From contig FLMG01002198.1 of assembly GCA_900088475.1 (NCBI GenBank), positions 1-35,759 on the forward strand: DNA of 35,759 nucleotides. Direction: 5' to 3'. Of this stretch, positions 3,819-33,267 are shown in pieces. Position numbers and translations under genes: made by a program. Within the stretch, counting starts at the first letter, position 1; each line of letters begins with the position of its first letter. The stretch comes from Hyphochytrium catenoides. Taxonomy: Eukaryota > Protista > Hyphochytriomycota. The notes beneath the pieces are model-generated. The model did not search any database. It saw only the letters and a list, made by a program, of their open reading frames with translations, and was not told the DNA's origin.

Positions 3819-6800
3819 CTGCCATCTCATCAATTGCCCGTTATGGTGCCATTGTTTGTCACAGCAGCCTTCATGCCAGCCTTATGCGCCGGCTGTAGGA
3901 GGTGGCGGCGTAGGTGCTCGGATGGGTGCCAACCTAGGTACTACTCTTACTGATGGTTTCGACGCATGAGTAGCATTGGTATCAGTCTAAAACCAGCCTT
4001 AGGAATCACACATATACATTACTTTAGATCACTAAACCCGACGATGAGCAGCCTAGGTGCCATAACCTTGCACGCGAGCGCTACTCATTAGCTATTGTTC
4101 CAGCTTATATGTCAGTCTTCGTTGCCAGCCTAATGACAGAGGAGATAAGGAGTCCGAGGTACACCTAGGTGCCAGTCAAAAGGTGCTATTCGAGAGGCCA
4201 TCCTAAGTCCCATCCTTAGGCTAGATGATATTCTGTTTCACCAAGTTAGGTGAAAGCCTAGTAGGTGCCAACCTGAGTTGCCATCAGAGTTGTCATGTTA
4301 AGATCTGACCTGCTAGTTTTTTTGTGCCAGTCTACGTCGTGCCAGGATGCAATCTTAATTTACCTGGCTAAACGCCATCCAATATTACTGCCCTCATCCT
4401 CTTGGTGGAACACTAGGTGGCCGATATGATTGCCAGCTTAGTCAATTCGGTTACAAGGTGCTAGTAGCGTAGGTGCCACCATAGGTCCCAGCTTTAGAAA
4501 TAGCCTTTATCCGCCTTAGAAACCAACGACGGCGTCAGTCTCAGACTTGATAACCTAGCTGCCATCCTAGGAGCCTTCCTGGCAGCCGCCAGCTCTATAC
4601 CGAAATAAAGTGCAACCCAATAGGCCACCTGAGTAGGTCCACGCCTGATAAGGATTGTAACCCACGAGAAAAGGAAGGCCTTCCTGGGGTCCGTTGGCCT
4701 GATAGCTTGACAGACCACACCGCGATGAAGGCAAACAGGCAGAAGAAGACTGTCGCGAAAACTATTCAAAGCGACTTTCCTCCAAAGAGAGTGCTTTACG
4801 TAGATAATTAGCGAATCCTATGAACAGCAAGGGCAATCTGATTGAGAAAGGAAAAAGAGAAGAAAGAAGGCATAAGGGGTGAAGAGAAAGAGTAGGCCGC
4901 AAGACTCTCGAGGCAGTAGAGAGAAACGAGAAGAGGAAGGAAAAGGGTCCAGTCGGTGCTGACTGCAAGTGCCGGGATATATCCTCCCGCGCTTGGCATC
5001 TGCCTTTTAGTCTTGAGTTCTGTCTCCGGTATGCCTGCCAGTTGATACTTTCTATGGCCAAGTGTGCACCAGAGATGGACGAACGACGACTATACTAGCA
5101 AGTACCACACACAGATTAGCTAGGTGCCAGGTGTCCTGAGAAAGCCTGTCTAACCTTCTCTATTAGCATAAGTACCAGCCTGCTGTGTGGTCGACTGGAG
5201 CCAGGCTCGGCTGGAGTCGGACTAGGTGCCAGCTTCTATAGCAACCGGAGGGTGCCAGTCTAATACTGCTGAAGTTCGGACTTTGTACTACTGGAAGTCT
5301 GTCGCGCGCTTTCGCTGCACTAGGCCGTGCTGCTTATCTGCGCCACACCTTGCAGATGGAAGGTCTGATGGCGCTCCGAACTTCTTCGCTGGACACAAGG
5401 ACCGAAGCTCTTGGAGGCCTTCCTTCCTTCACGTTTCTTCTCCAAAGATCCTGCTTCTTCTCTCCCTTACTACTTCTACCTTACTTACCGTGTGTTGCAC
5501 TCTTATCTAAGGACTTAAGGGTGTAAGAGGTAGCTCATCAGTGGTGATAGCTCATAGGTAGAAACTTTGGTACTTTAACTATAAGAACTCTAGCCAAGAG
5601 CTTCATGAGCACTTGTCAGTTGATCAATTCATTCATACATCATTCTCCTACGAAGAGTAGAATCCAGCACTGCCTCTCCATCAGCACGCAACTAAAAAGT
5701 TTCAGCTCAGGTACCAGCGCAGCTTAGGTGCCAGTCTACGTCCCCGCTTAGTGTCAGCCTTCTGTGACGCGAATTCTATCTGATCCCGCTTGGTGCCAGC
5801 GATGGTTACTGCCTTGGTCCGAGCCTAGCTTCCCAGTCTCAGAGCCAGCAGTACGATCCAGCCTAGGTACCAGCCTTTGGGGGATTGTCATAACATCACA
5901 ATAGACAAAAAAGGAACATTGTCATCCGCAAATATGTAGGGCATTCTGGTGCGTAATAAGAGATGGAGATCCTTGCTCTTTCTCGATAAGCTTGGACCAG
6001 CACCGCTTCGGTCGGACGCAATCAAGCCCAGAAGCATGAGCACTGACGCTCTTTATACAGGCGGTACCATGCTCCAGCTTCAACACGAAGAGTCGTGTAC
6101 TTCCAACAGTAAGTAGTTGTTCAAGTAGAGTTGTTCACAAGCACCTTAGCCTTCCTTATCATACAGTTGGTGTCATCATGGTGCTAGCATATTAGCGCAC
6201 GTGTTTGTGTCAGTCCTCCCACTTTATGTAGCAATCTTTACAGAAAGTAGCGGCATCGTTTCTTCTTTCAAAGGGCAAGTAGTGTCGGTCTAAAGCAGCA
6301 TTGTTGGTCGGCTAAAAAAACAAGGGCTAGACACGTTAGTATAGGCTGATTTTACCTTGCGGTCGCATGGGCAAGACCAGACACAGAAGGCTGGCCTCGC
6401 ACCACTGCAAAGCGTGGTAATGTCTACAATCACGTGCTAACTCAAATCTATTGAGATCTGTAGTAGGTAACATGGCACCAGCTAGGAGCACCATTGATTT
6501 GTAAGGACAGACAAAGGGCAAGAGGAGGCAGAAAGTATTCCTCCCGTACAGGTAAGACAAAGGTGAGGATAGGAGCTCAGTGGTTGGCCGTAAGCTTTAT
6601 CTTCAAAATGAATACTGGCCTCGCCTAGGCATCCTCCAACCTTGTGCAATTGTTGTTGCCTCCAGCCTGCTGTCAACCTTTGGTGGTGCCAGATTATGGG
6701 CCAGGATAAGTGCCAACATAAGTGCCAAACAACATAGGTGCTAGCCTACGTTCCAGCCTTAATAGAGTATGTGCCAATACTTTAGGTGTTAGTCTAGGTA

Positions 6801-7672
6801 TCAAGCGGAGGTACTAGTAGCCGATGTATCAGCGTAGGCGTCAGGCTAGGTACCGCCATTGAAAGTAGTATTATACGTGACAATCTCAAATGACATCCTC
6901 CTAGATACGTGGCGTAGGTGTTAGGTTAACCGGCAGTGTTGATTGTCAGCCTACAACCTAGGTGTCCTCCTTCATGCCAGCCAGATTGCCTTGGTGCCGG
7001 TAGAACCCAAGCAATCTTGGCGTCGGCCCTACGTGCCAACGTAGGTGCCAATCTGGGTAATTTCTCGTCGTTCTAGTAGTCTACAGTGCTAGGTTAGGCG
7101 CAAAAAACTCTTCGTGCTAGCCTAGGTGCCATAAATCTCCTCCTTAGCGCTAGCCGTGATGGCCATAAGAAGTGCACCTTTAGGTACCAGTTTAGATACC
7201 ACCCTATGACGACGTACGCGCCTAGCTCCAGCAATTTAAAGTTGGCAGCCTTATTACATGGCAGCCTAGGTTGCAAAAGGCCATTGTAGGTGCCAACCTG
7301 GGTGCGTCTGGAGATGTTTTTGATGCCACTCTTGCTGCCAGCCTGGCTTGAAGCGTAAGCCTCAATCTCGATACCAGAGTAGAAGCTACGAGCCTACTAG
7401 AAGCCGGATTGGTCGATTTAGCCTGGTGGCAGCCGTAGTTGCCCACTTAGATGCCACCCAGACGTGTCCAACAGCTTAGATCTCAACCTTACTTGGCCTC
7501 CTTAGGTAAGCCCTGAGTAGGTGACCTAGGTGATTAATTCTATGTGCCAGTCTTAGCGCTGGACTTTGGGCCAGCATAATATATTTATAGTACCAGGATT
7601 AGTGGTGATCCATCCTCACCCTGCCTTGGTGTCAGCCCAAGTACCACCCTTAAGATCCCCCCCCCCCGGCAG

Positions 7673-11325: not shown

Positions 11326-12588
11326 TCACTGTGGTGCCGGGATACAGTTCGGGCCATCTTCTACATAGCCTGTGTCACAGTGGCAGTGGTCCCCATGAAG
11401 ATGACCATGCCCACCGCACTCCTCTTCTTCGTCGTGAGGAGGCAACTCTGTTGGACCCGGAGCAGGAATGCAGGTGACTCCGACTGCAACATAACCTGGG
11501 CTACAGTCACAGTGATCATCGTGCCATGTGCCATGACCACTGCACTCTTCAATGACACAGCTAAGCCCGAGCGCCACATAGCCAGGCTCACAGTCACAGT
11601 GGTTGTCATGTAAGCTCCCATGCCCGCTACATTCCGCTTCTGGCTTAGGGAAGGCCCGAGTGGTCTTGTTGGCAGGGACGCACGTGAGTCCATCAGCTAC
11701 ATAGCCCGGGTCGCAGTGGCAGTGGTCACCATGAAGATGACCGTGTCCGCCGCACTCAGGTCCCTCTGTAGGGGTAGGGGAAGTACTCGTCGAAGGTGCT
11801 CCGCTTGGATTGGCAGTGGTAGGCTTAGGCGTGGCGGCTGGCACACAGCTGAGTCCATCAGCTACATAGCCCGGGTCACAGTCGCAGTGATCGCCGTGAA
11901 GATGTCCATGTCCGCCGCACTCAGGTCCCTCTGTAGGCGTAGGGGGAGTTCTAGTAGTGCTTTCTTTGTCTTCAGCCCTGCAACCTGGAACCCCTGTTCT
12001 CACAGTGCCGCAGTAAGAGCCATTGGGAAGTCCTTCCTGTGGTCCAGGGCAGTTGCCCTTGGGGAAGCCTCCAACACAGATAGGAATTGGGGCGCAGAAA
12101 GTATCGTAGTACTCTACTGACACCGGCAGCTGCCCTGGAGGGCACTTTACCCTTGCTTTCGAAGGAGATTCTACCACCCAAGGCCCCTCGGTTGCGATCT
12201 TTGGCGGCGGCGTACTGACCTCAGATGATGGTGCAATGGTGGTAGTACTTCTGGTGGGAGTAGGGGGCGACGTAGGTGATCGAGGAGATGGAGTTAAGGG
12301 CTGCACACTCGGTTTTTCGGCGGGTGGTGGAGGGGAAGGCGTGGTAGCATCTGCCATGATGGGAACACATGTGGTACCGGAAGGCTTATAACCAGCATCG
12401 CAGTGACAGTGGTCCCCGTGCATCCACCCGTGCCCTCCGCACTCATCTTTGTTTCCGCCCCCTCCTGCTAGCACACAGCGATCTCCTTCCCATGAACCTC
12501 CTTCTGCCAAGCAATCTTCGATACTCAAGCCCGTAGTCAGGGAGATGTTCAGCCCGGCTAGAAGCAGCACTGCGAATAGCCAGCGCAT
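11326..12588 (-). CDS. Secreted His/Cys-rich repeat protein (420 aa) with six 4-Cys His-EGF-like repeats and mucin-like P/T/S linkers; candidate zinc-scavenging protein
   Basis: The ORF track starts at a TTG (12912), but the ATG at 12588 (aaacgATG) opens a signal peptide MRWLFAVLLLAGLNISLTTG. Six C-x10-C-x-C-x10-C repeats (consensus ECGGHGHLHGDHCHCDPGYVADGLTCVP) lie at 12367-12441, 11845-11919, 11680-11754, 11557-11631, 11470-11544 and 11344-11418. A separate 6-Cys domain lies at 11980-12144. No C-terminal TM or GPI signal. Confidence 0.88.
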   Translation of the reverse strand: MRWLFAVLLLAGLNISLTTGLSIEDCLAEGGSWEGDRCVLAGGGGNKDECGGHGWMHGDHCHCDAGYKPSGTTCVPIMADATTPSPPPPAEKPSVQPLTPSPRSPTSPPTPTRSTTTIAPSSEVSTPPPKIATEGPWVVESPSKARVKCPPGQLPVSVEYYDTFCAPIPICVGGFPKGNCPGPQEGLPNGSYCGTVRTGVPGCRAEDKESTTRTPPTPTEGPECGGHGHLHGDHCDCDPGYVADGLSCVPAATPKPTTANPSGAPSTSTSPTPTEGPECGGHGHLHGDHCHCDPGYVADGLTCVPANKTTRAFPKPEAECSGHGSLHDNHCDCEPGYVALGLSCVIEECSGHGTWHDDHCDCSPGYVAVGVTCIPAPGPTELPPHDEEEECGGHGHLHGDHCHCDTGYVEDGPNCIPAPQ

Positions 12589-15500
12589 CGTTTGCTTGAT
12601 CCGGGTCCTTCCGCCCTTAGAGACTGCTGCAGACTGTCTTTTGCTGGTGAAACTTACTAATAACACTCTCTTAGAGTAGGAAAATTGAGGAATGAAAGAG
12701 GACGGTGACTCTGTGGGAAGGGGCATTCTTATTAACCTGACTACATAAGTCTCTGACGGATGGTGCTGTTTGTGGCTCTCCTCTTCTTCTTGTTTCTTTG
12801 TTCTCTTCAAACTCTTCCTAAGACTAAAACTGAGGGAGTCAAACAAGTCCAACGAAGGGGAATGATGACAAGGAAGGGGAGTTTGGAAAAACAGAGGAGT
12901 GTCTCTCAACAAAATGGTTTCTTATCCAACCAGCTTGTACGAGCAGGTTCAATAAAGAGAAGAAGCTACTTCCTCGTGGCACGATCCGACACGGACTTCT
13001 TGAATCCCTTTTAGCCATTATTAATCTTGCAAGAGGCGCTCAACGAGCGGATGCTGATGGAGCCAGGAAGGATGAAAGACGAAGAGGTGACTAGGTAGGA
13101 CAGGTAGCTTATGACGCGAGAGAAGGGCTCCTTCCTCACTCGCTTACCCTTCTGGCCTAGTTGGCGTCGTCAGATAAACTAATTAAGTCATGAGTTATGA
13201 AGGTCAGTAGTGGTGCTCAGTGTAGTGCTGGTTGCAAAATCCTCACGTCTTTCTGTTCTTTGACTTTTGTGGCCCTTCTTTTGCTTCCTGCCTCTCCCTC
13301 TCTTGCCTTCGCCAGTAGTGACAGTGCGATGATTGCAGCAGCGTACAAAAGAGTAAAGGGCACCTCCAGCAGCAGCTTTACCAGAACTACTGCTTATTTC
13401 TTCTACGACGAATGGCTCCATAATAGTTCCTCTATCGCTCGCCACCAGCCATCATCATCTACAAGCTCGAAAGTAGAGCAAATCGTATGGCGAAGATGCA
13501 AGCAGAGCACGTTCATCCAACAGTGTCGTGATGCCTCGTCACTTTCTTCTCCGGCTTTCGTTCTTCGGCGTCCTTCAACGCAAATTATCGCCTTCGGATA
13601 ATGGAGGTCTCAAGTGTACCTCCATTATTCTTCTTAATTAATACTTCCCTTCTCTCTCCATTAGCTCTTTCTTTTCTGGCTCCTCGCTCACTCTTTCTCT
13701 GTCCTCTTTCGCCTCCCCGCAAGTGGTGGTAGTTCAGGAGAAACGAAGCACCACAGCAGGATCCTTTCTTCGCCAGGATCAGTGGTGGTGACCTTCTCCT
13801 AACCAGGGAAAACTTGTCGGAGGAGGAGGAGGATTGCCATGAGGATTGCCCCCTTTTGGTTGTCGCCTCTTTTCCCTTTCTTTTTCTTCCTTCTGCATGG
13901 ACGAGAAGCGGGAAGAAGAAGACAGCCGGCGGAGGCCAAGGAAAAGGAGAGACTCACACTGCTGCTGTCCGTCTCAAAGAGTGCCAGGTTCTTATCCGAA
14001 GGCGCAGCATTCGCACGCTTTGTCATAATACTACAGTAGTGGCGTGGTAGTGCAGGTGGTGGTGGCAGGTGAAGAAGCCAGAGGAGGAGGACAAGGAAGG
14101 GCAACGGAGGAGGAGGACATGCCGATAGATCTGCAGGGAATAAAACAGTTTAGTTCCCTGTACAGCGGTACTCCGAGTGTCGCCATAGTTAATGTTATGA
14201 CGACCCAGCGGAAAAGATACAGCAACAACGCACTTTATTCCCCCTAGTTATCTCACAAGGGTGGGAGGCTTGCTGTACGGCGATGACGCATGTAGCGGCT
14301 AGCCTAAGTAGCTGTGATTAGGGACACGAGCTGAATAACATCAACAACGCACATTTGGCGATAGAGATCGTCATTATCCGAAGGGGAACCATCTTGCCTC
14401 TTCGGGTCCTTTCTCCTCCTCCCTCCTCCTCCCTTGCCGGCTGTTTGTGCTGCACTTCTTGGTGGTATCCGAAGGCGATGATGCCACAAGCTTTGGTTCT
14501 GATTCTCCACAACTCTCTCTCTCTNNNNNNNNNNNNNNNNNNNNNNNNNNNNNNNNNNNNNNNNNNNNNNNNNNCTCTCTCTCTCTCTTCTTTCCTCCTC
14601 CCGCTCTCTTGGTCTCTCCTCTCTCTATATTTTTCTCCTAACTTTCTCTTTCTTCTTTCTCTCTTTCTGTCGTTGTCTCTTTCGTCCCTTCGTGTTTTCT
14701 AAGCTTTCTCCTCGTTTTCTCTCTTTCTTCACTTTATCTCTCACTACTCTCTCCTTTCTCACTCTCTCTTCTCTTTCTCTCACTCTCTCTTCTTGCTCTC
14801 TCTCTCTCCTCTCTCTCTCCTCCTATGCCCCTCGTCATAACGAAGAAAAGTAATAAGAAGGTAACCTTGGCAGAGGGAAGCGAGCGGAAGAAGGAAGAAG
14901 GAGGCAGACTCCGAACACGTGCCCGAAGACCAAGCAGCGCGGTGAATCCTAAGGTTATTCTGCTGCAACACCGTCGGAGCAAAGCAAATCGAGAGAAGAG
15001 AATCGTTAGTTGTTGAATCACAATCAATGGCAGCGGGAGCAGACCCAATTTTGTCGATCGGCGGCACCAATGTGGCCGACCATTAGCACGTCAGAGATGA
15101 CCAAAGCTGCTCTTCAATCCCTTGCCTACAGCCATCAATCCGAAGGCAACATCTCCGTTGCGCTGAGAATTTGAAGGACCAGAGGGCTCCTCCGAAGAAC
15201 TAGAGTAAATCCTGAGGAGGGAGCGACACACACACGTGCATCCAATAGCTGTTTCTTAGATAGCTCCTGTCCTGTCAACATCAGATCAACAATATCCGTC
15301 ACTTCCCTTCTTCTATCCATTCTATTATCTTCAGCAGCTTATCCTGGTAGAGAGGACTAAACATGAGAGGAAAGCCAAGCGTCTACACTTGAGTTCCCTT
15401 TACAGCTTAGCATCGAAGAGCTTTCTGAGCTCTATTTACTAGAGAGAAGCGTTCTAGAGAACTGGTCATTGAGAAAGCGGCGCCGTCAGTTAGAGAAGCG

Positions 15501-15643
15501 AGTGAAGACTGCAAAAGTTAAGAGGAGCCAAGGTTTAGGAGCCTCTAGTTACCCGAAGACAACCACTATAGGTCTCTCTCGCACTTTTGCAGAAGGTCCG
15601 CCCCAGTGCCGCTTCGATCTATCACCTCTAATAGCTGTCAGTC

Positions 15644-17646
15644 ATGCCTGGGTCGGGATGTGCCCAGTCCTTCCTCCACGAGCTGCCGGCTTTCATACCT
15701 CGTCCACGGAAGCTCCTCCTTCTTATCTGTCTTTTAGTGAGTCTTCTGGACGCGGGCAGCGTTGGCTCCTGGCGCTCGCGAAGCTTTGCTGCGGCGGAGA
15801 CAGGGGAGCACCAGGAGCACGCACAGGAAGAGTGCAGCGGCCATGGCAGACTGCATGGCAACCACTGTCACTGCGAGAAGGGATATATCCCTAAAGGAAC
15901 ACTATGTCTTAGCAAGGACGAGGCGAATGCCAAGACCTCCTCGGAACTTCCCGCTGCTTGTCCTAGGCCAGCAGGAATGATAGAATTTGAGCGGTCAGCC
16001 CTGCTGCGGCTAGATCAGGGCTCCTACAGTCTCCAGTTAGCGGGCAATAACGCATCCATGGCGCTGTTTATAATCCCTCTGCCAGGTGCTAATGAAGAAA
16101 CCTTCCAGCAAGATCTGCAGAACTCGCGAGATGAAGCGATGGAGTTGCTCCAGGATGTGGCTTTACCACGGAAGGTTCTAAAGAAAGGAGAGATACTAGT
16201 GCCCTCAGAGAAGATTATGTACGTCATTCCCAGAAACGACGCCGAGAAGCTCCATCAAGAGAAAGAGAAGTGCCTGCAGACACCTGGCAATGTCTGGCAC
16301 GTGGATCATTGCGATGGTCCCGAGAGCGGCCACCGTTTGCGCGTGAGGCAGCGCCTTCTGCAGTCCTCGGTAGACTTCTCTTCCTTCAATCTCACAGTGT
16401 CTACCGCCTCGTACTATGCTCTGCACTTACAACTCGATGCAATGGAGATGTTCGGCATGAAGCTTGTCAACCCTATAACAGGAGAAGCCTTACCCATACT
16501 AGACTCTATTCGCTTGGACGCTGATCCCCCTGGTAGTAGCTCAGATCAGGCGGGCAGTGCTGGTACTGAACGGCTTGATGAGCAGAAGAACGAGGAAGGG
16601 CGCAGTGCCACCTTCTCGGACTGGTGGAAGACGCTAGTGGCTGTGGCTATTGTCACTCTAATCTCCGTCATCGGCGTGCTTCTGCTCATTTTCAAGTGGC
16701 AAAGACTGCAGAGGTTCATTAACCTAATGATCTCCATTGCCTCCGGCGCCCTCTTCTCAGCGTGTGCTATGCACATTCTCCCAGAGTCCATCGAGTTCTA
16801 TAACATCTATGGACAGATGTCGACGGAAGTGAGTCTTCTCTTCTCAACTGGCTTTTTGGTAGCTTTGATCGCAGAGATGACGGTCACGGTTGCACACAGC
16901 AAGCTTCAGCGGGGACATCACCATCACCATGCAGCACCAGCGGAAGCTCCGGTTCTGACGCCTCCTAGCGAGGATCGCTCTTCTCCTATAGTGAACCATA
17001 ACGGAACTACGGTGTTCGAGAAAGCGCCAGCAGAAAGAAGCTCTGTTGGGACTGGCGCTGTAGGAGGGTTGATGAAGGTTGACTGGGACGAGGTGAAGCC
17101 TGTTGCGTACGTCATCCTTCTTGGCGATCTCTTCCATAACTTTGTAGACGGAGTGCTCATTGCCACAGCCTTCTTGGCCTGTGACAGCAGTCTGGGAATC
17201 TCTGTCACTCTGTCTGCCATCCTGCATGAGATTCCACAGGAGTTTGCTGACTTTGTGGTGCTGGTCGATGCCGGCCTTTCTCCTCGTCAAGCCTTGCTGC
17301 TGAACCTGCTAAGCGGGTTGTCATCTTTCCTTGGGGCGATCATTGTTCTGCTTGCTGTGGCTATCAATCAACAGATGCTTGGGGGCCTTTTGGCAGTTGG
17401 GGCGGTAAGAGAGATTATCTGCTTTGGGGCTAATAGTAGACCTGCATCTTAGCATCTGTTCAACCTTTCCTTCCTGCTGTGCTTCCTTTCTTCTAGGGTG
17501 TGCTGATCTATATCGCAGCGACCGACTTACTGCCGCGTGTGGTGCATGGTGTTGGAAGCTGGAAAGACTTCTTCGTCAACATTATGCTCTTTCTAGTAGG
17601 CGGCGTTGCCGTGGGCCTGAGTACGCTGTATCACGTGCATTGCTGA
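15644..17646 (+). CDS. ZIP: ZIP (SLC39) family divalent metal (zinc) transporter, LIV-1-like, with long N-terminal ectodomain; exons 15644-17404 and 17497-17646, ~636 aa
   Basis: N-terminal hydrophobic signal. TM1-3 include SGALFSACAMHILPES. His loop GHHHHHA. TM4 is GDLFHNFVDG and TM5 is HEIPQEFADF. The phase-0 intron 17405-17496 restores the missing end of TM7 (GVLIYIAATDLLP) and TM8, ending LYHVHC-stop. Confidence 0.95.
17405..17496 (+). other. Spliceosomal intron (92 nt) in the ZIP gene
   Basis: Donor GTAAGA; polypyrimidine tract followed by TTCTAG acceptor. Splicing yields the conserved ZIP G-x-x-x-Y-I-A-x-x-D-L-L-P motif in frame. Confidence 0.9.
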
Positions 17647-22255: not shown

Positions 22256-22520
22256 CATGCGAGAGCGTTCAGGAGAGAGAGAGGCAGAGCAGCGGATCAT
22301 CCAAGGTGGAGGGGAGCAAGAGAGGAAGAGAAAGACAAACGGAGAGCAAGAAACAGAGGGAGAGAGAGAGAGAAACTAGAAGAGATACTAAAGGAAACGA
22401 GAGAAAGAAGACCACCCGAGACAGTGTCATGCCTTCCTCTTCATTTTCCTTCAGTCTCTCCTGACTCCTCACAGTGCTGGCCGCCAGGTTGTGGATAATA
22501 ACGTGGAAGAACAGACAAAA

Positions 22521-22596
<76 letters not shown>

Positions 22597-22830
22597 GGGA
22601 GCATGCGAGAGTGTTCAGGAGAGAGAGAGGCAGAGCAGCGGATCATCCAAGGTGGAGGGGAGCAAGAGAGGAAGAGAAAGACAAACGGAGAGCGAGAAAC
22701 AGAGGGAGAGAGAGAGAGAAACAAGAAGAGATACAAAAGGAAACTAGAGAAAGAAGACACCGAGACAGTGTCACGACTTCCTCTTCATTTTCCTTCGCCA
22801 GGTGGTGGATAATAACGTGGAAGAACAGAC

Positions 22831-22840
<10 letters not shown>
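22252..22840. repeat. Tandem duplication, ~346-bp period, units joined through (AG)n tracts
   Basis: GGAGCATGCGAGAG.GTTCAGGAGAGAGAGAGGCAGAGCAGCGGATCATCCAAGGTGGAGGGGAGCAAGAG... begins at 22252 and 22598. Both units end in GCCAGGT.GTGGATAATAACGTGGAAGAACAGACAAAA followed by (AG)n. Confidence 0.88.
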
Positions 22841-22884
<44 letters not shown>

Positions 22885-23479
22885 CTGAAGGAATGCTGAG
22901 GATGATGCGCCGGCGGCTGGGAAGAGAAGAAGAGCAGGAAAAGAGCTCCAGGAAGAGGTAAAGCCATATCTCTTTCCAACATCTCTTTCACGTGAGCAGA
23001 GGAACTTTTACTGAGGAATTCTTGTTCTCTGTCTTGCTGTTCAGTGCTCTCTCCTTCGGCCTCAGAGGCCCAAGTCGTGGACTGACACGTCCTCTCCCGC
23101 CCGCCCTGAGAGCAGGCGGGCAGCTGCCCAAATTTGATGAGCTCAATGCTGCGGCTTCTTTCTCTCTCTCTCTCTCTCTCTCTCTGTCTCGCCCTCTCTC
23201 TTTGTTTAGAAGCTTCGTCTCTTACCAGCAGGCTGCTCTCTCTCTCTCTGTTTCTCTCTGTTTGTCCTCGTTGACCTCCACATCATAGGAAAAGCAAGCT
23301 CTCTGTCGGAGAGAGAGAGAGGAGAGAGAACAGTTGAACAGCTTTTTCTTTTCTGTGAGAAAGGGAGATGATAAGTGTGAAAAGTGTGAGAGAGAGAGAG
23401 AGCACTTCTGTTGGGAGTTAAGGCGGAGCCTCTCCCATAGCTGCGGGTGTACAACTCAGAGCGGCAGGTCATCTCTCTG

Positions 23480-24046: not shown

Positions 24047-24413
24047 AAGAAGGGCAATTCTCATTCTGATCCTTCCCCTGCCCTCATCCGGCGTATCTAT
24101 GGGTCATTTCTAGATAATAAAGACGGTCACAGCCTGCCATACGGCGTATCTTTGGATACAGTGAGACCTTTGTGTAGCCTGTACATAGGAGCAGTTTCTC
24201 CGAGAGCCGCTAACCGCCAAGATATCAATCCAATCTTTTACTTAGAAAAAGGAAAAGGAAGAAAGGAAGGGTGTCGGATTCTTCTCATCCATCCCCTACC
24301 CATGCCTGTATAATCTAATGTTTTTCCCCTGCTTTGGGTAGGGTTTACAGTAAGGCCAGCCCTTTGTGCCTGCTTCCACTTGATGTCGCACCACCTTCTA
24401 GGAAACAATCAAT

Positions 24414-24462
<49 letters not shown>

Positions 24463-25345
24463 CCTCTCTCTCTCTCTCTCCCTCGCTCTCTCTCTCTCTC
24501 TCTCCCTCCCACTCTCACTCACTCTCTCTCTCTCTCTCTCTCTCTCTCGTTTCTCCTCTTGCACGCAAGCAACAAAACCAGTCTTCTAGCACCACCTGCG
24601 TCCTGGCTCCTCCTTTGGCAGCGACCAGCAGCTGCCCCGCCGCAGAATCAGAAGCTTGGAACAAAGAAAGGAGAGAGAGAGAGAGAGAAAGAGAAGAGAG
24701 AGAGAGGAGAACAGAGGCGAGGGAGAGAGCGCAGAGGTGAAACAAGCATAAGGACAAGACGGAAGGGAGAGAGAACAGACCGGTTGCAGAGAGAGAAGAA
24801 GGCGGCCATCGAGTTTCCTAAAAATACGACAGACGTCAGCGCTTTTACCTTCTTTCGCTCTCTCTCTCACTCTCTCTCTCTCTCNNNNNNNNNNNNNNNN
24901 NNNNNNNNNNNNNNNNNNNNNNNNNNNNNNNNNNNNNNNNNNNNNNNNCTCTCTCTCTCCCTTTCTTCCTCTCGTCTTCCTCTCCCTTTCTCTCTCTTTC
25001 TGTATCTATCTCTCTTTGGCTTGTATCTTTCTGTCCCCTCTCCCCCTCCTACTGTCACCTGATGGAACTCTCTCTTGGCCATCCTCTCTCCTCTGCTCTT
25101 CTGCTCTCTTCTTCCTCTTCTTCCACATCTGCCGCCAGAAGCGAAGACGCATCTGCCGCCGCAAGATGTCTACACGCAAGAGAGAGACGGACGAGACTAC
25201 ATAGAAATAAATTAGAGAGAGAGAGAAAGACGTCTCGCCGACGCAGCAAGAGAGAGAGAGAGAGACTGGCTACCAGATCTCCAGCAGTAATAGGAGAGAG
25301 AATAAAGACAGAGTGAGAGAGAGAGAAGAGAAAGAGACAAAAGCC

Positions 25346-26689
25346 ATGGGTCTTTTCAGCCGACATCGCTCTAATAAAGAGTCGGAGGAGGTCAGTGGCG
25401 GGGGAAGAGACGCCGGCTTTGGAGAGAAAAAAGTCGGGAAGAGAGGCGAAGAGAGAGAGAGAGAGCCTGAGGCGGAGCCTATTCTTCTCTCGACGCCTAC
25501 GCCTTCCCCTTTCCTTTATCCTCCTGTCTCTTCATCTTCAGCCCCAGGGCCAGCCGCGGGAGGATCTATCGACAACAACGTCTCTCTCTCTCCCTCTTTC
25601 TCTCCTCCCCAGCAGCAGAAGCAGAGAGTGGTTGTGACCAAGAGAAGAAAGAGACGCTTTCTCCCTCGTCTACGGCCTTCTCTCTCTCCTGCCTGGACTG
25701 TCGCTCTCAATAACTCTGTGAGTTCTACCACGGAGAAAGCTCTAGAGAGAGAAGAAGGCAAGCTTGTCGTCGGTCCTCTCCGTACAACCTCCGCCTTTCT
25801 CTCTCGCGGGAACTATGAAGTGCCGCGTCTTCCTCCCGGACGAGTTCTCTCCCACATCAGAGAGAATCTTCATTATTTTCAGGCGAACTATGTGGCGTTT
25901 GGCATTCTTCTCCTGGGAGAGATGTCTCTCTCTTCTCCTGGCATCGTCATTCTCTTCTTCTCTCTCCTGGGAAGCTTCTTTCTTCTTGACACTTGCTTGT
26001 TTAGAGCTGCGATTGCGTCTTCTTCTTCTTCTCTCTCTCTCTCTTCCTCCCCTCCTCCTCCTTCTTCTCTTCCTCCTGCTCCCTCTTCTTCTCCTCTCTC
26101 TTCTTCTCCTCCCGTTCTCTCTCCCTCTTCCTCTTCTTCTTCTGCGCATTCCGCTCGTCTCTCTCTCGCGAGGAAACACCTGGCAATTGCTCTCGTATCT
26201 CTTGGACTCTTTCTCTATGTCAAATTAGGACTCTGGTTCAAAATTGTCGGAAACTCTTTGGTCTGGCTGACCGTGGTGCTGACTCACGCCACGCTGAGGA
26301 CGCGGAGCTGGAACAATCGGATGAAGAGAGAGAAAGACAGAGTCTTCTCTTCTTCTCCGTCCGTAGCCTCTGAGGTTATTGACTGGGTGTTTGACCGGCT
26401 TCCAACAGGGAAGAGAGAGAGAGAGAATGAGATGCAAGTGTTAATGCAGGAGAGAGAAGACGAGAGGAGACAGATGATGGGCGACGGTGGTGCTTGTCCG
26501 TTGTGCACTGGAGGAGGAGAAGGGCAGGCGGGAGCTCTCTCTCCTGGGGTCGCTTCCTGCCCGCAGTGTATGGCCATGAGGAGAGAGAAAGAGAGAGAGG
26601 ACAGGTCATCCTGTCCGCTCTGTCCTGCAGCAGCCCCGAAAGGGGACGCTCCTGCTGCTGCGTCTCAGGCAGTGGCAGCTGTGGGATAA
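25346..26689 (+). CDS. PRA1: PRA1 family (prenylated Rab acceptor 1 / Yip3-like) membrane protein, 447 aa, with low-complexity extensions
   Basis: ATG in gccATGg context at 25346. PRA1 motifs LRTTSAFL...YEVP...IRENLHYFQANY and VVLTHATLR flank two long hydrophobic hairpins. Unrelated to the fungal zincophore also named Pra1. Confidence 0.82.
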   Translation: MGLFSRHRSNKESEEVSGGGRDAGFGEKKVGKRGEEREREPEAEPILLSTPTPSPFLYPPVSSSSAPGPAAGGSIDNNVSLSPSFSPPQQQKQRVVVTKRRKRRFLPRLRPSLSPAWTVALNNSVSSTTEKALEREEGKLVVGPLRTTSAFLSRGNYEVPRLPPGRVLSHIRENLHYFQANYVAFGILLLGEMSLSSPGIVILFFSLLGSFFLLDTCLFRAAIASSSSSLSLSSSPPPPSSLPPAPSSSPLSSSPPVLSPSSSSSSAHSARLSLARKHLAIALVSLGLFLYVKLGLWFKIVGNSLVWLTVVLTHATLRTRSWNNRMKREKDRVFSSSPSVASEVIDWVFDRLPTGKRERENEMQVLMQEREDERRQMMGDGGACPLCTGGGEGQAGALSPGVASCPQCMAMRREKEREDRSSCPLCPAAAPKGDAPAAASQAVAAVG

Positions 26690-27645: not shown

Positions 27646-29141
27646 TCATGGTGGGTTCGTGCCCTTCGTATTAGCGACGATCCCTGAACCTCCTCCTCCT
27701 GCTTTTCCCGTGGCCAGATAGCTCGCCTTGATCATCTCCCTCGCGGCCTTCACCGCTCCTTGTCTCTTCTCTCTCTCATCGTTTTCTCTCTCTCCCCAGT
27801 TCTTCATCTTGAGTCCTCTTTGCATCCAGACGCGGAACTGGATGATAAAGAAGCCGAGGATGTAGATGAGGAAGTAAGCGATCACCCGCTGGATAAGAGC
27901 GACAGTGTCTCTCACTCTCTCTCTCAAGAGAGGAATAGGACAGATTGTCCCTGCAAAGTTCGGAACATCATAGAAATCTTCCTGGGAGACAATCAGCCAT
28001 TTCCCTGTCTCTCCCTCTTGAGGAGGCTGTCCCTGGTGCTTGGCTAGCGCTGCCACGCAGGCAGACGCGGAAGTGTCCACCACTTCTCCCGCTCTCTTCT
28101 CTCTCTCTTCGGGTGTCTCTCTCCTCAGCTTGATGATGGAGACGACTCTGACGTCTGCCTCGGCCTTGAAGATGAAAGGATAGACCGTGTAGCTCAAGTC
28201 CGTCACCAAGCTCTTCTTGTCAGCGCTGAAGTCTTCAGGAGAGAAGAATGAGAGGAGAGAGAGCAGGCACGAGAGGAGAGAGAGCAGGCGCAAGAGGAGA
28301 GAGAGCAGGCACAAGAGGAGCGAGAGCAGGCAGGAGCGAAAGAGAGAGAGACAAAGGAGAGGGATGGGCGGAACAAGAGAGAATGACGGAGAGAGTGTGC
28401 GGGTGTATGTGAGGGAGAGAGAGAAGAGGTGGCGAGAGAGAGAAAGAGAGAAGAGGTGGTTTTACATACGAAGAGTAACAGAAAGAGGAGAGGAGAGATT
28501 GGTCACTATGATCACTGGTGGACGGATGAGCTAGAGATAAAGAAGAGAGGTTCACCATGGCGGCACTGACGATAATAGACATAGAGAAAGAGAAAGCGCG
28601 AAGAAGAAGATCGTACGTGAAAGACAGGGTCAGACAGACAGAGCGATGGCACAGGCATTACATGGGAGCAACAAGACAAAGGCAGAGAGAGAGAGAGCAG
28701 ACACAGAGAGAGAAAGAGAGAGAAACAGCGAGACAGAGACCGACAGGACAGAGAAAGTGAGAGAGAGAACAAGCGAGAGAGAGAGAGAGATGGACAGAGA
28801 GATACAGACAGACACGGAACAGAGAAAGAGAGAGAGAGAGAAAAGCGAGAGGGAGAGACGACCAGAGAGAGACAGGCAGACAGACAGACAGACAGAGAGA
28901 GAGAGAGAGAGACTCCCGCCTTACATATATCATTCAGCACGACATCTCCCATGCGATAGTTGCTGGAGGCCCAGGTCGTGTACAGATCTCTGATCTCCTG
29001 CCTTCCCTTGAGGATCATGGCCGGATGCTTGAACTGCGCCTCAGGAGCGAAGAACTGGTCCACGACGCCGCCCACCTGGCGCACATCAGAGGTCAGCAGA
29101 CGCTGAAGGAGGCCGTAGAACTCACTCTCAGGCTTCTCCAT
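27646..29141 (-). CDS. NTF2/SnoaL-like domain protein with C-terminal transmembrane helix; exons 29141-28925 and 28232-27646, ~267 aa
   Basis: Joins two track ORFs via a phase-1 intron (GTAAGG at 28924 ... long CT tract ... GAAG at 28233). The product reads MEKPESE...DQFFAPEAQFKHP...KGRQEIRDLY...LNDIYFSADKKSLVTDLSY...VRVVSIIKL...WLIVSQEDFYD. This is the SnoaL-like pattern (F-A-P-D/E-A-x-F-x-H-P, G-R-x-x-I, I-x-x-Q-E-D-x-Y), followed by VIAYFLIYILGFFII. Confidence 0.78.
28233..28924 (-). other. Spliceosomal intron (692 nt), CT-microsatellite rich, with ~4 copies of a 21-bp repeat near the acceptor (28250-28335)
   Basis: Strong GTAAG donor. The AAG acceptor is the first AG after an extended pyrimidine tract and preserves frame. 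The repeat unit on + is GAGGAGAGAGAGCAGGC(A/G)C(A/G)A. Confidence 0.7.
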
Positions 29142-30454
29142 CTTTGTTATTAAAGCTCAGAGTCTGTCGGAGAGGAGGAGGAGCGAAGAAGAGGAGAGAG
29201 AGAGCTGATAGTCTTTATTTTATCTCTTTCTTTATTGCGACGGATAGCTGAAGGTACTTCGAAGGTGGTTTCTCGTCTCTGCTGCAGACTGCGACTTATG
29301 ATCTGCCTGTCTGCTTCCCAGTGCCTCCTGCCTGAGATGCAGTCCTCTCTCTCTCTCTCTCTCTTTCTCTTTCCTTGTCCCTCTCTTGCTCCTCAAGAGG
29401 GAGGATTGGAACACGCTGCCGTTCCTCTCTTCCTCTCTCGTCGGTCTTTCTCTGGCCTTCTTCCATCGCCCTCGAGTTGCTTCATTTTCTTCAGAAGCAA
29501 CGTGTCAGGAGAGTGAGGCCGCCCTGTCGAAGCGTTTTGGACCTCTATTCACAGATCTAAGATCTTTCTGTGCGGTCTATCTCTCTCCCTCCCTTTTAAA
29601 AAGAATGTTGTCTCTCTCTCTCTCTCCCCTCTCCCTCTCTCTCTCTCTCTCTCTCTCNNNNNNNNNNNNNNNNNNNNNNNNNNNNNNNNNNNNNCACAAT
29701 TTCTCTTCCTGTCTACTTCTCTCTGTCTCTCTCTTCTCCTATCTGTCTGTCTCTCCTCCCTCCTTCTGAACGGTCACTCTCTCTCTCCCTCTCTCCTAAC
29801 GCATTTCTCGTCGCTCTGTCTCCTGCTTGTATCTCCATTTCCTCTTCGTCCCTCTCTCTGCCTCTCTCGATTCTCACTCTGCTCCTCTTTGGTCTTTCAT
29901 CGGCACAGCTCTTGCTCTCTGTCTTTTATGTGCCGTCTCTCTGTGTCCCAATTATTCCCCTGTAACACCTCTAGATGACCGTCTGTCTCGCTGTTATCCA
30001 CCTCTGTCCCTCTCTGTCTCTCACCCTGTGCAGGGTCCACGACAAAGGGTACAAAAGAGCTATTTCTAAACATTAACCGCCCATCTGGTCACCTAACCCC
30101 AAGAAGCATTAGGTGGTGGCCCCTATCTCTCCTCTAAGATATGCCGCCTAATCTTCTTTGTAACGGATGAGAGGTCAGAAGATATATTCGGCTAGCGTGG
30201 CCGAGAATAGTAGGCTTCCTTAATAATGACGGCTGTATGGTTCTATGGATATCGTTGCTGCATCATTTCAAAATCCGAACGTGGGAACGGCGCCCGAAAC
30301 GGTGTTGGCTTCCTTTCACTATATTTGGACGCCTATTCTCTCTCTCCCTCTCTCCGCCCTCTCTCTCTCTTTCTTTCTCTCGTCTGCCTCTCTCATCACT
30401 CTCTTCTACATCTCCCTCTCACTCCTGCCTCTCTCTCTTTCTTTCTCTCTTCTG

Positions 30455-30502
<48 letters not shown>

Positions 30503-30917
30503 CTTTTTGTCTCCCTCTGACGCCAATACAGTACAACGCAGTCCAGATCTCTCTGTCCCTGTAAAAAGCCATCTCAACTTCCGATCTCTGTGCGGAGATT
30601 CTTTTCTCTTCGTGCTTGTCTGTCTCTCTTTTATCTTCTGTTCCTTCTTCTTCCCCCTTTCTTCCTCCTTCTACCTCTCTCTTTCTTGTCTCTTGCCAGT
30701 ATTCCTGAGCCAACCATACACTTCCAATCTCTAGGTCTTCCTCTATTATTCTTCCGCGACTCTTAACACGATTGTTCATCCGTCTCTCTCCCTCTTCTCG
30801 CGCCCTCGCCTTTCTGGTCATTGAACAAACAACGAGCCAGACTCAACAGCGATAAGGAAGTAAGGTCTGAACTCTGAACGGCAGCCAGAGGACGAATTAA
30901 TGCAGAAGAGCTGAACG

Positions 30918-31107: not shown

Positions 31108-33267
31108 TTAGAGCTCCTCCTTCCTCTTCTCCTTCACCAGGATGACCTGCTCGTGCTCTGGCTCAGTCTCTTTGTTCCCTCCTCCGATGGTGCTCTCCTT
31201 GATATAGTTCACCGCTTCCTTAATGTAGCCAAGCACCCCTTCCTTCCCCTCTTCTGTCTTCTCTCCCGTGTAGTCTGCAGCATTCTGCGCCTTCTCCTTG
31301 GCCGCCTGAAGATTCTCTTCTGCTAATCTTCTTCCTTTCTCTCCTGCGCGGCCTGCAGCGTCACGAGCTTGCTCTGCCTTCTCCTGCGTGTAGCTTGCAC
31401 CTCTCCTGCCGCTTGCTTTCAAGTCCTCCTTCTCTTGCTCAGCCTTCTTCTCTCCAGAGTGCACATAGCTCTTCACCGTGTCCTTCAACGACTGGACTTT
31501 CTCTGCAGCAGAGTCTTTCAATGACCGAGCGCTGTCCTTGGTGCTCTCCTTCGTAGCAGCAGCGCTGTCCTGGACTGAAGAAGCGCTGCGACGTGCAGCT
31601 TCTCCTTTCTCTGCGGCTGTCCTTCTGACCGTCTCTCCTGCGTCGCCTGCCTTGTCCCAGACTGTCTCCGCAACATCTTCTGACTTGTCCTTCACATACT
31701 CTGCCCCGCTCTGCACGGTATCCTTGGTCTTCCGCGCCGCGTGAGCCGCAGTCTCGACGCCAGCCTTCGCCGAGTCCCGAACCTTCTCTGCGCCGCTCTG
31801 GACGGTCTCCTTGGTGTACTCTGCAGCGTCTTCAGCCTTGTCTTTGACGTACTCTGCGGTCTCGCCAGCCTTATGAAGTCCGCTTTTAGCCTTGTCCTGA
31901 ATATATTCCGCGGCGCGGCCTACCTGCTCTCTGGCCGCTTCCATTCTCCTCCTGGCAGCGGTCTGCGCGGCGTCCACAGCTTCTCCTGTCTTCTCCATGC
32001 CGCTGCGCGCTGTGTCAGAGACGTACTCAGCGGCCTCACCAGCTCTTTCTCTTGCAGCGCCGACTGTCTCGCCTGCCCGTTGTCTAGCGGCAAAGGCAGC
32101 CTGTTCTGCTCTCTGTCTGGCAGACTCCACGGTCTCCCCAGCTCTTTCTCTTGCCGTGCCAACTGCCTCTCCAGCCTTGTTGACTCCGCTTCTCGCGCTG
32201 TCGGCTACATATTCTGCGGCTCCAGTGGCGCTGTCGCGGACGTACTCTGCAGCGCTGCCAGCCTTGTCCATGCCGCTTCTTGCACTGTCCCTCACATACT
32301 CTGCGGCGTTTCCAGCCTTGTCCATGCCTGCGCGGGCTGCATCTCTTGCCAGGTTTGAGGCGTTCTCCGCTCCTTCAGCGGCAGAGTCCCTGACGTACTG
32401 GGCACCCTCTCCTGCGCGGTTGAGGCCGCTTCTGGCACTGTCTTTGACATAGTCTGCAGCGCTTCCAGCCTTGTCCATGCCACTGCGAGCAGTCTCTCGT
32501 GCGTACTCGCCGGCGCCGCTGGCCTTGTCTCTCGCGGTCTCGGAGGTTGCTTCCATTCTTCTCCTCGCGGTTGCCTGGGCAGAGTCAGCGGCTTCTCCGG
32601 CCCTGTTGAGGCCACTCCTAGTCGTCTCACGAGCGGAGTCTGCAGCCTGTCCAGCGCGCTGTCTGGCAGCATCGACAGTCTGTCCAGCCTTGTCCATTCC
32701 GCTTCTCGCGCTGTCCTTGACATACTCTGCAGCGCTCCCAGCCTTGTCCATCCCGCTGCGCGCGGTGTCCTTAGCATAGTCACGAGCAGATGCAGCAGCG
32801 TCTGCAGCCTTGTCCTTTGCTGCCTGGGCAGAGTCCTTGGTATAATCGATGCCTGCAGCAGCCTTGTCCTTTGCTGCCTGGGCAGAGTCCTTGGTATAAT
32901 CTACGCCTGCAGCAGCCTTGTCTCTGGCTGCCTGAGCAGAGTCCTTGGTATAGTCGACACCGGCAGCGGCCTTGTCTCTGGCTGCTTGTGTCTTGTCTGC
33001 TGCTGAATCCTTGAGGATATCCTTAGAGTCCCCGAGATGCTCCTTCAATGAGATCGCGCCAGACGCGGCCTGCTCTTTTAGAGCTTCTCCGCCCGCAGCG
33101 AGGTGCTCGCCAAAGGATTGTACGCCTGCAGCAGCATGGCCCGCAGCGTCAGATGGCGGCGTATCCTTGTTACCGCGGCCAAAGAACGCAGACACTGGCT
33201 GCTGACTGGCTAAGGCGATAGAGGAAATGCAGAGGAAGAGCCCCACACGGCGGTAAGGCGCTCTCAT
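31108..33267 (-). CDS. Late embryogenesis abundant (LEA, group 3-like) protein, 719 aa, with signal peptide and C-terminal KEEL
   Basis: Intronless ORF rich in A/K/D/E/R/S/G/T. Repeats of 11/18/22 residues such as AQAAKDKAAAGVDYTKDS and ARSGMDKAGSAAEYVKDS. N-terminal MRAPYRRVGLFLCISSIALA signal. Ends ...KEKRKEEL-stop. Confidence 0.88.
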   Translation of the reverse strand: MRAPYRRVGLFLCISSIALASQQPVSAFFGRGNKDTPPSDAAGHAAAGVQSFGEHLAAGGEALKEQAASGAISLKEHLGDSKDILKDSAADKTQAARDKAAAGVDYTKDSAQAARDKAAAGVDYTKDSAQAAKDKAAAGIDYTKDSAQAAKDKAADAAASARDYAKDTARSGMDKAGSAAEYVKDSARSGMDKAGQTVDAARQRAGQAADSARETTRSGLNRAGEAADSAQATARRRMEATSETARDKASGAGEYARETARSGMDKAGSAADYVKDSARSGLNRAGEGAQYVRDSAAEGAENASNLARDAARAGMDKAGNAAEYVRDSARSGMDKAGSAAEYVRDSATGAAEYVADSARSGVNKAGEAVGTARERAGETVESARQRAEQAAFAARQRAGETVGAARERAGEAAEYVSDTARSGMEKTGEAVDAAQTAARRRMEAAREQVGRAAEYIQDKAKSGLHKAGETAEYVKDKAEDAAEYTKETVQSGAEKVRDSAKAGVETAAHAARKTKDTVQSGAEYVKDKSEDVAETVWDKAGDAGETVRRTAAEKGEAARRSASSVQDSAAATKESTKDSARSLKDSAAEKVQSLKDTVKSYVHSGEKKAEQEKEDLKASGRRGASYTQEKAEQARDAAGRAGEKGRRLAEENLQAAKEKAQNAADYTGEKTEEGKEGVLGYIKEAVNYIKESTIGGGNKETEPEHEQVILVKEKRKEEL

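Follow-up and report, generated by a model that had tools for sequence, protein, structure and literature searches.

A histidine-rich, four-cysteine variant of the EGF fold, probably zinc-binding, in a secreted protein and a divergently encoded ZIP transporter of Hyphochytrium catenoides

When examining a 35,759-nucleotide stretch of the Hyphochytrium catenoides genome (positions 1 to 35,759 of contig FLMG01002198.1, assembly GCA_900088475.1; hereafter, the window), we found an apparently secreted protein that contains six copies of a 25-residue module combining an incomplete set of EGF cysteines with a dense and regular set of histidines. The same module, denoted here His-EGF, is present in the ectodomain of a ZIP family metal transporter that is encoded head-to-head with the six-module protein. 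In our judgment, the module probably is a zinc-binding EGF variant with a role in zinc acquisition, and the protein of the window a secreted scavenger that is paired with the ZIP. Beyond the window, the module is distinct and widespread, and is an unnamed variant of the EGF fold without a family model of its own: none of the module proteins that we scanned has a model in NCBIfam, and a literature search with motif strings, with histidine-rich EGF-like zinc-binding domains and with EGF plus ZIP in Toxoplasma and Phytophthora as subjects returned nothing relevant.

The open reading frame (ORF) of the six-module protein, as read from its translation, starts with an ATG at 12588 on the minus strand and ends with a stop at 11326. 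All six modules, each of 25 residues, fit the pattern C-[GS]-G-H-G-x-x-H-[GD]-[DN]-H-C-[HD]-C-x-x-G-Y-x6-C; together, they account for 150 of the 420 residues of the protein and hold 24 of its 25 histidines and 24 of its 32 cysteines. This concentration and the repeat pattern itself are far beyond chance. The linkers between the modules are Pro/Thr/Ser-rich, with the exception of that between modules 4 and 5, which are only four residues apart. At the DNA level, the copies are only 65-87% identical and, in particular, the codons of the invariant Cys, His and Gly residues differ synonymously from copy to copy, so it is selection, rather than recent duplication, that maintains these residues. 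The original prediction, which was made from the DNA sequence of the window, had described six repeats across 11344-12441 with three to five histidines each, HGDHCH in repeats 1, 3 and 6, HGNHCH in the ZIP copy and Asp as the third ligand in the remaining repeats. The translation bears out this description in full: the span is delimited by the first residue of module 1 and the last residue of module 6, and the Asp variants HGDHCD, HDNHCD and HDDHCD are found in repeats 2, 4 and 5.

The assignment of the module to the EGF-type fold, with four cysteines and two hairpins in the predicted structure, holds. In a Pfam scan, the six-module protein matched EGF_Teneurin (PF23106) over six stretches with 47.1 bits, against a gathering cut-off of 24.3, whereas proteins with a single module scored 25.7, 24.4, 19.5 and 17.7 bits against the same cut-off. 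The match covers positions 4-22 of the 30 positions of the profile and leaves its start unmatched, so the site of the first cysteine of EGF (C1) falls outside the module match. Compared with the tenascin/teneurin EGF repeats (EGF_Teneurin and PF25024, EGF_TEN), the module has in common the small fold, the C-x-G-H-G start and the C-x-C-x-x-G-Y/F...C end, but contains four cysteines instead of six, lacks C1 and has a hydrophobic residue at C3, fixes His or Asp at positions 8, 11 and 13, with His frequent at position 6 as well, and occurs for the most part in bacteria and on metal transporters. By the tenascin pattern, we take the L/M/W residue of the module to be the C3 site. In canonical EGF domains, the disulfides join C1 to C3, C2 to C4 and C5 to C6; under this scheme, two of the three (C2-C4 and C5-C6) would be retained in the module, with C1 and C3 lost. 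The question posed by the original prediction, namely, whether an existing Pfam family covers the module, thus has a divided answer, in that EGF_Teneurin passes its cut-off for the protein as a whole, yet each module has only four of the six cysteines, and not the three disulfides, that characterize EGF.

Structure prediction agrees with the profile match. An AlphaFold2 model of repeat 6 with its flanks (35 residues; 150-sequence module alignment) has a mean predicted local distance difference test (pLDDT) score of 92.3 and has short strands at four places in the construct, namely, residues 10-13 (GHLH), 16-19 (HCHC), 23-26 and 29-32. The best Foldseek rows for this model were integrin beta-2 I-EGF1 and a reelin EGF domain, with query template modelling (TM) scores of 0.64-0.67, root-mean-square deviations of 1.6-1.9 Å and E-values above 1, the weak statistics being due to the tiny size of the domain. 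An exhaustive VIA-align comparison yielded 23 chains at Z>=2, all of them EGF domains, including ADAM22, the second EGF domain of Toxoplasma gondii MIC6, integrin beta-3 and P-selectin. When the sequences of the window protein and of a second protein (P0072) were searched against the PDB, no significant relatives of known structure were detected. The confident model and the exclusively EGF structural matches are in line with the EGF-type repeat that was originally predicted; the predicted absence of C1 and replacement of C3 likewise stand, given the four cysteines per module, the unmatched profile start and the lack of any cysteine within 8 residues upstream of the module in 252 of the 274 instances described next.

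A word search with the window protein retrieved 114 proteins, and from all proteins fetched, we extracted 274 distinct module instances. Positions C1, G5, C12, C14 and G17 (module numbering) are invariant among these. The remaining conserved positions are 4 (H, 84%), 6 (H, 41%; E, 29%), 8 (H, 95%), 11 (H, 76%), 13 (H, 77%; D, 19%), 15 (D or E, 93%) and 18 (Y, 86%; F, 14%), these percentages being upper estimates given that the sample is skewed toward sequences resembling the His-rich query; the alternation of His and Asp at position 13 is a family-wide feature. The module is carried by lipoproteins of Myxococcota and Bradymonadales, by oomycete ZIPs and a second, Tetraselmis-type ZIP subfamily, by Myxococcota HAF/DUF3466 proteins with up to seven tandem modules, and by small PPC-domain proteins and CPR-like proteins. 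The Nannocystis-type lipoproteins, of about 290 residues, have one module at either end, a linker that is acidic and in some cases His-rich, and a central beta domain in which a CGTC...HGDHxxC stretch is conserved; AlphaFold2 modelled this central domain with a pLDDT of 82.8, and neither the PDB nor the ESM Atlas contained a convincing match to it. A feature search of the ESM Atlas returned no usable match.

In a separate comparison, module 3 with its flanks proved to share 27 of 29 residues with the first repeat of a DUF3466 protein from Myxococcus faecalis (P0002, residues 34-62), and it is closer to this repeat than to the module of the neighbouring ZIP gene. This near-identity could mean either that the short motif is strongly constrained or that it was transferred between myxobacteria and stramenopiles.

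The predicted structure suggests what the histidines might do. Under the DSSP strand register of the model, with a two-residue Gly-Asp turn and standard hairpin geometry, positions 6, 8, 11 and 13 (His, or Asp at position 13, as in half of the six window copies) would share one face of the main hairpin, and Leu7, Cys12 and Cys14 would point to the opposite face. The resulting rectangle of histidines would resemble the zinc sites of beta-sheets, in which an HxH pair is joined by a cross-strand His; on a beta-sheet, ligand sets made up entirely of N and O are typical of zinc sites. The view of the module as a putative metal-binding mini-domain is supported indirectly, by three independent lines: this register, the fusion of the module to two ZIP subfamilies and the zinc-starvation neighbourhoods of the bacterial module genes.

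The ZIP gene of the window consists of two exons, which we analysed separately (the mechanically listed ZIP ORF of 602 amino acids runs into the intron). Between its ATG at 15644 on the plus strand and that of the six-module gene at 12588 on the minus strand, no convincing ORF was found. The closest relatives of this ZIP are those of oomycetes (Pythium, Phytophthora), which are about 42% identical to it along about 90% of the length, and all the full-length oomycete ZIPs that we examined start with the module directly after the leader; UniRef names some of them only "EGF-like domain-containing protein". The Tetraselmis-type subfamily is 21% identical to the oomycete one and contains one to three modules interleaved with HDEHDH-type stretches. 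The presence of the same module in two unrelated ZIP lineages suggests a functional tie between the module and the transported metal. The module resembles the His-rich loops and ectodomains of other ZIPs in being an extracellular N-terminal segment rich in metal ligands, but differs from these disordered loops in being a folded, disulfide-bonded unit of 25 residues with a fixed ligand pattern.

A different set of secreted proteins is encoded beside the ZIP orthologue of Pythium oligandrum (L054, 8001-9829). Upstream of this gene, at 4433-7440, there are three genes for small secreted Cys/His-rich proteins that share a repeated C..ACD...KC.DRACH.ALH...FCHGEGPDPE unit and have only sub-threshold matches in Pfam; one of these proteins ends with HDHEHEHEHEHEHDH...HHHH and a hydrophobic C-terminus. 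These proteins may be another secreted metal binder beside a ZIP, and the layout fits a general arrangement of secreted binder plus ZIP in this lineage.

The bacterial gene neighbourhoods provide an independent line of comparison. Nine loci of module proteins were read first. In Nannocystis punicea, the module gene lies among three genes for COG0523 GTPases and those of a TonB-dependent receptor and a flavin oxidoreductase; at another locus, it has a divergent Fur-family regulator upstream and a cobW-like gene downstream; in another lineage, FolE2 is the divergent upstream neighbour; and at yet another locus, the order is TonB receptor, DUF6702, HupE/UreJ, module gene and two COG0523-like genes. 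FolE2 is a zinc-independent replacement enzyme that is typical of Zur regulons. Against the curated NCBIfam cut-offs, two of the COG0523 neighbours qualify as the zinc metallochaperone ZigA (635 and 607 bits vs 600) and the FolE2 neighbour as FolE2 (263 bits vs 215). We then selected 44 loci, one genome per species, by the module pattern alone (14-sequence alignment) and searched their ORFs with seeds from the first loci. A COG0523-like gene is present within 10 kb of the module gene at 18 of these loci, often within 1.5 kb, and Fur-family genes at 10. By architecture, the COG0523-like gene was found at 13 of 19 lipoprotein-type loci, 3 of 6 HAF-fusion loci, both PPC-fusion loci and 2 of 18 loci with other architectures. 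Since three architectures that have only the module in common share a zinc context, the module is the likeliest reason for the linkage. As regards gene order, that of a ZigA-like COG0523 GTPase, a Pyr_redox_2 flavin/NAD(P)-dependent oxidoreductase and a His-EGF lipoprotein recurs at six loci (L001, L014, L020, L043, L044, L047) and others, often with a Fur-family regulator nearby.

These lines of evidence suggest the following mechanism, for which we infer the histidine face from the strand register and, in addition, metal binding, zinc as the metal and the hand-over to the ZIP. The main hairpin (x-H-L-H, a G-D turn and H-C-H-C) would expose three or four histidines to the solvent, sometimes with Asp at the last site, and this patch would form a divalent-metal site, most probably for Zn(II). 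The six modules, borne on flexible Pro/Thr/Ser-rich stalks, would capture extracellular zinc and pass it to the ZIP that is encoded 3,055 bp away and whose ectodomain starts with the same module. One- and two-module lipoproteins of Myxococcota and their relatives would serve the corresponding function in the cell envelope under zinc starvation.

Two known systems are close in layout to the window pair, and both are analogies, not homologies. In pneumococci, zinc bound at the HxxHxH site of PhtD (His83, His86, His88 and Glu63) is handed on to AdcAII, the product of a gene in the same operon (PMC3842936). Repeats 1, 3 and 6 and the ZIP copy also contain the literal HxxHxH motif, and the streptococcal Pht proteins (PhtA, PhtD) resemble the window protein in that short beta units are repeated on a surface or secreted protein whose gene is linked to a zinc importer. 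The module, however, is built on a disulfide-bonded EGF scaffold, three of the six repeats carry Asp in place of the third His, and the partner is a ZIP rather than the binding protein of an ABC system. The parallel drawn in the original prediction therefore stands for the motif and fails for descent: homology to Pht was rejected, with no Strep_his_triad match at E<=1 in Pfam and no Pht chain in the PDB sequence search. In fungi, PRA1 and the gene of its ZIP have their upstream region in common, and it is via this ZIP that Pra1 brings zinc back to the cell (PMC3386192, PMC12663325). The window has the same arrangement as the fungal Pra1/Aspf2 and Zrt1/ZrfC locus, with a secreted His-rich protein divergent from a ZIP and an upstream region shared by both genes. 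By contrast, the EGF module is dissimilar to Pra1, a deuterolysin-like hexamer with an HRxxH+H triad and a CHTHxxGxxHC tail (PMC12663325), and in the window, the ZIP itself carries the module of the secreted partner. No Pra1-type families (deuterolysin-like core) were detected in the Pfam and NCBIfam scans, in which the domain content of the window protein was EGF-like only.

Several observations weigh against the zinc-scavenging interpretation. The histidine cluster is deduced from the hairpin register alone, the logo sample is biased as noted above, and His11 is replaced in about one quarter of the 274 instances; many tenascin-type EGF repeats contain the His of GHG as well, and so it need not be a metal ligand. 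Zinc genes were not found near 16 of the 18 loci of other architectures or near the Myxococcus HAF/DUF3466 locus (L002), and the chance of about 2% for a COG0523 gene to occur in a random 20-kb stretch of such genomes is an estimate. A second in-frame ATG lies upstream, at 12726, and with this start the hydrophobic N-terminal segment becomes a possible membrane anchor, so the start codon and, with it, secretion as opposed to membrane anchoring of the six-module protein are uncertain. Finally, a word search with the window protein revealed no orthologue of it in oomycetes, and a search for sequencing runs returned DNA runs only and no RNA run.

Alternatively, the module may bind a metal other than zinc, such as Fe(II), Cu, Ni, Co or Mn, which would make the window pair an uptake unit for iron or another of these metals. 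This seems unlikely to us considering that two COG0523 neighbours reach the curated ZigA cut-off, that FolE2 adjoins the module gene in one lineage and that the predicted ligand sets are of the kind typical of zinc. Nevertheless, His-rich sites favour Ni and Cu as well, the COG0523 and Fur families also serve other metals and have Co, Fe and Ni members, and the Fur-family neighbour, for which the two models, Fur and Zur, give equally poor scores, cannot be assigned to either. The ZIPs, too, carry Fe and Mn besides Zn, and one ZIP moves both Fe and Zn (PMC12875612).

Another explanation, which we regard as improbable, is that the module is a structural or adhesive EGF-like spacer, namely, a rigid glycosylated stalk or a site of protein contacts, with histidines that are a lineage signature or a pH switch. 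Placement of the repeats by Pfam under the teneurin-type EGF, the classic use of EGF arrays as spacers, the common occurrence of GHG in tenascin-type repeats and the Myxococcus HAF/DUF3466 fusions without metal genes nearby are all compatible with such a role. It leaves unexplained, however, the near-total concentration of the histidines in the modules, the maintenance of His or Asp at positions 8, 11 and 13 across bacteria and eukaryotes, the ZigA, FolE2 and Fur neighbours in three bacterial architectures and the acquisition of the module by two ZIP subfamilies. Least probable, and in our opinion quite improbable, is a docking or regulatory element (with homotypic, perhaps metal-bridged contacts, ZIP dimerisation or sensing, the secreted protein being a ligand, decoy or wall anchor) or a fold in which zinc substitutes for the lost disulfide: both partners of the divergent pair bear the module, Nannocystis-type lipoproteins have one at each end and Pra1 re-associates with cells via its ZIP (PMC3386192), but structural domains that require zinc would be counter-productive in zinc-starvation loci, and single-module bacterial proteins occur without an obvious partner.

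The preferred interpretation, that of a zinc-binding module in a scavenger paired with a ZIP, can be extended considerably further, to a version that we put forward only tentatively and consider doubtful as a whole. Under this version, His-EGF would be a trans-kingdom zinc-capture domain and the window would encode the first non-fungal protein zincophore system; the secreted scavenger would dock on the ZIP ectodomain via the same module, perhaps through a shared metal; the myxobacterial lipoproteins would belong to Zur-controlled operons with ZigA; and the near-identity of module 3 to the Myxococcus repeat would be the result of transfer.

The positions of the two genes and their parts are given in Table 1. 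A hypothetical protein of Pythium brassicae (P0022; 51% identity, E 4e-13) has two tandem copies that match the six-Cys domain separating modules 1 and 2, and no Pfam family was found for this domain. Elsewhere in the window, a secreted-looking protein of 719 amino acids (31108-33267, minus strand) consists of degenerate KDSARSGMDKAG-type repeats of LEA-like character and has a weak match to Apolipoprotein A1/A4/E; a PRA1-family protein (prenylated Rab acceptor; 25313-26689, plus strand) is unrelated to Candida Pra1; and two ORFs at 27646-29141 on the minus strand resemble the two parts of one NTF2/SnoaL-like gene with an intron or a low-complexity insert between them. Long (CT)n/(GA)n microsatellites occur throughout the window (e.g., 22269-22961, 24334-25062, 28512-29141 and 30237-30734), and the intergenic tracts give rise to LSLSLS/ERERER pseudo-ORFs. 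Together with the LEA-like gene, these microsatellites at first suggested a coccidian genome, a reading that was rejected in view of the oomycete ZIPs being the closest relatives of the window ZIP. Seven runs of N, 322 bases in total, indicate a draft assembly.

Table 1. Features of the divergent gene pair (positions are those of the window)
Feature	Position	Strand	Remarks
Coding sequence of the secreted six-module His-EGF protein	11326..12588	-	420 aa, stop included; ORF list, translation, Pfam
Signal-peptide-like N-terminus, MRWLFAVLLLAGLNISLTTG	12529..12588	-	Hydrophobic; putative, read from the translation
His-EGF module 1	12367..12441	-	HGDHCH type
Six-Cys domain between modules 1 and 2 (CPPGQ...CPGPQEGLPNGSYC...GC)	11980..12147	-	Unrelated to the modules
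His-EGF module 2	11845..11919	-	HGDHCD type
His-EGF module 3	11680..11754	-	HGDHCH type
His-EGF module 4	11557..11631	-	HDNHCD type
His-EGF module 5	11470..11544	-	HDDHCD type; four residues after module 4
His-EGF module 6	11344..11418	-	HGDHCH type; copy used for modelling
Shared upstream region of the divergent six-module and ZIP genes	12589..15643		3,055 bp; 50-N assembly gap at 14525-14574
ZIP transporter, exon 1	15644..17404	+	587 codons; Pfam Zip 2e-31
His-EGF module of the ZIP ectodomain	15833..15907	+	HGNHCH type; soon after the hydrophobic N-terminal leader
ZIP intron	17405..17496	+	GT..AG, 92 nt; before the last transmembrane helix
ZIP transporter, exon 2	17497..17646	+	Last helix; ends ...LYHVHC, stop included; by-eye comparison with oomycete orthologues

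If the module indeed binds zinc, the EGF fold would gain a metal-capturing variant, and a function would become apparent for hundreds of "hypothetical" lipoproteins encoded in bacterial zinc-starvation loci. Protein zincophores have been called unique to fungi in a recent structural study (PMC12663325); the six-module protein of H. catenoides would then be a candidate for a non-fungal one. With its 25 residues, two disulfides and a tunable His/Asp site, the module would also be a convenient model for metal selectivity. Moreover, zinc binding would explain the conserved element at the N-terminus of the ectodomain in the ZIPs of oomycetes, among which Phytophthora and Pythium are major crop pathogens.

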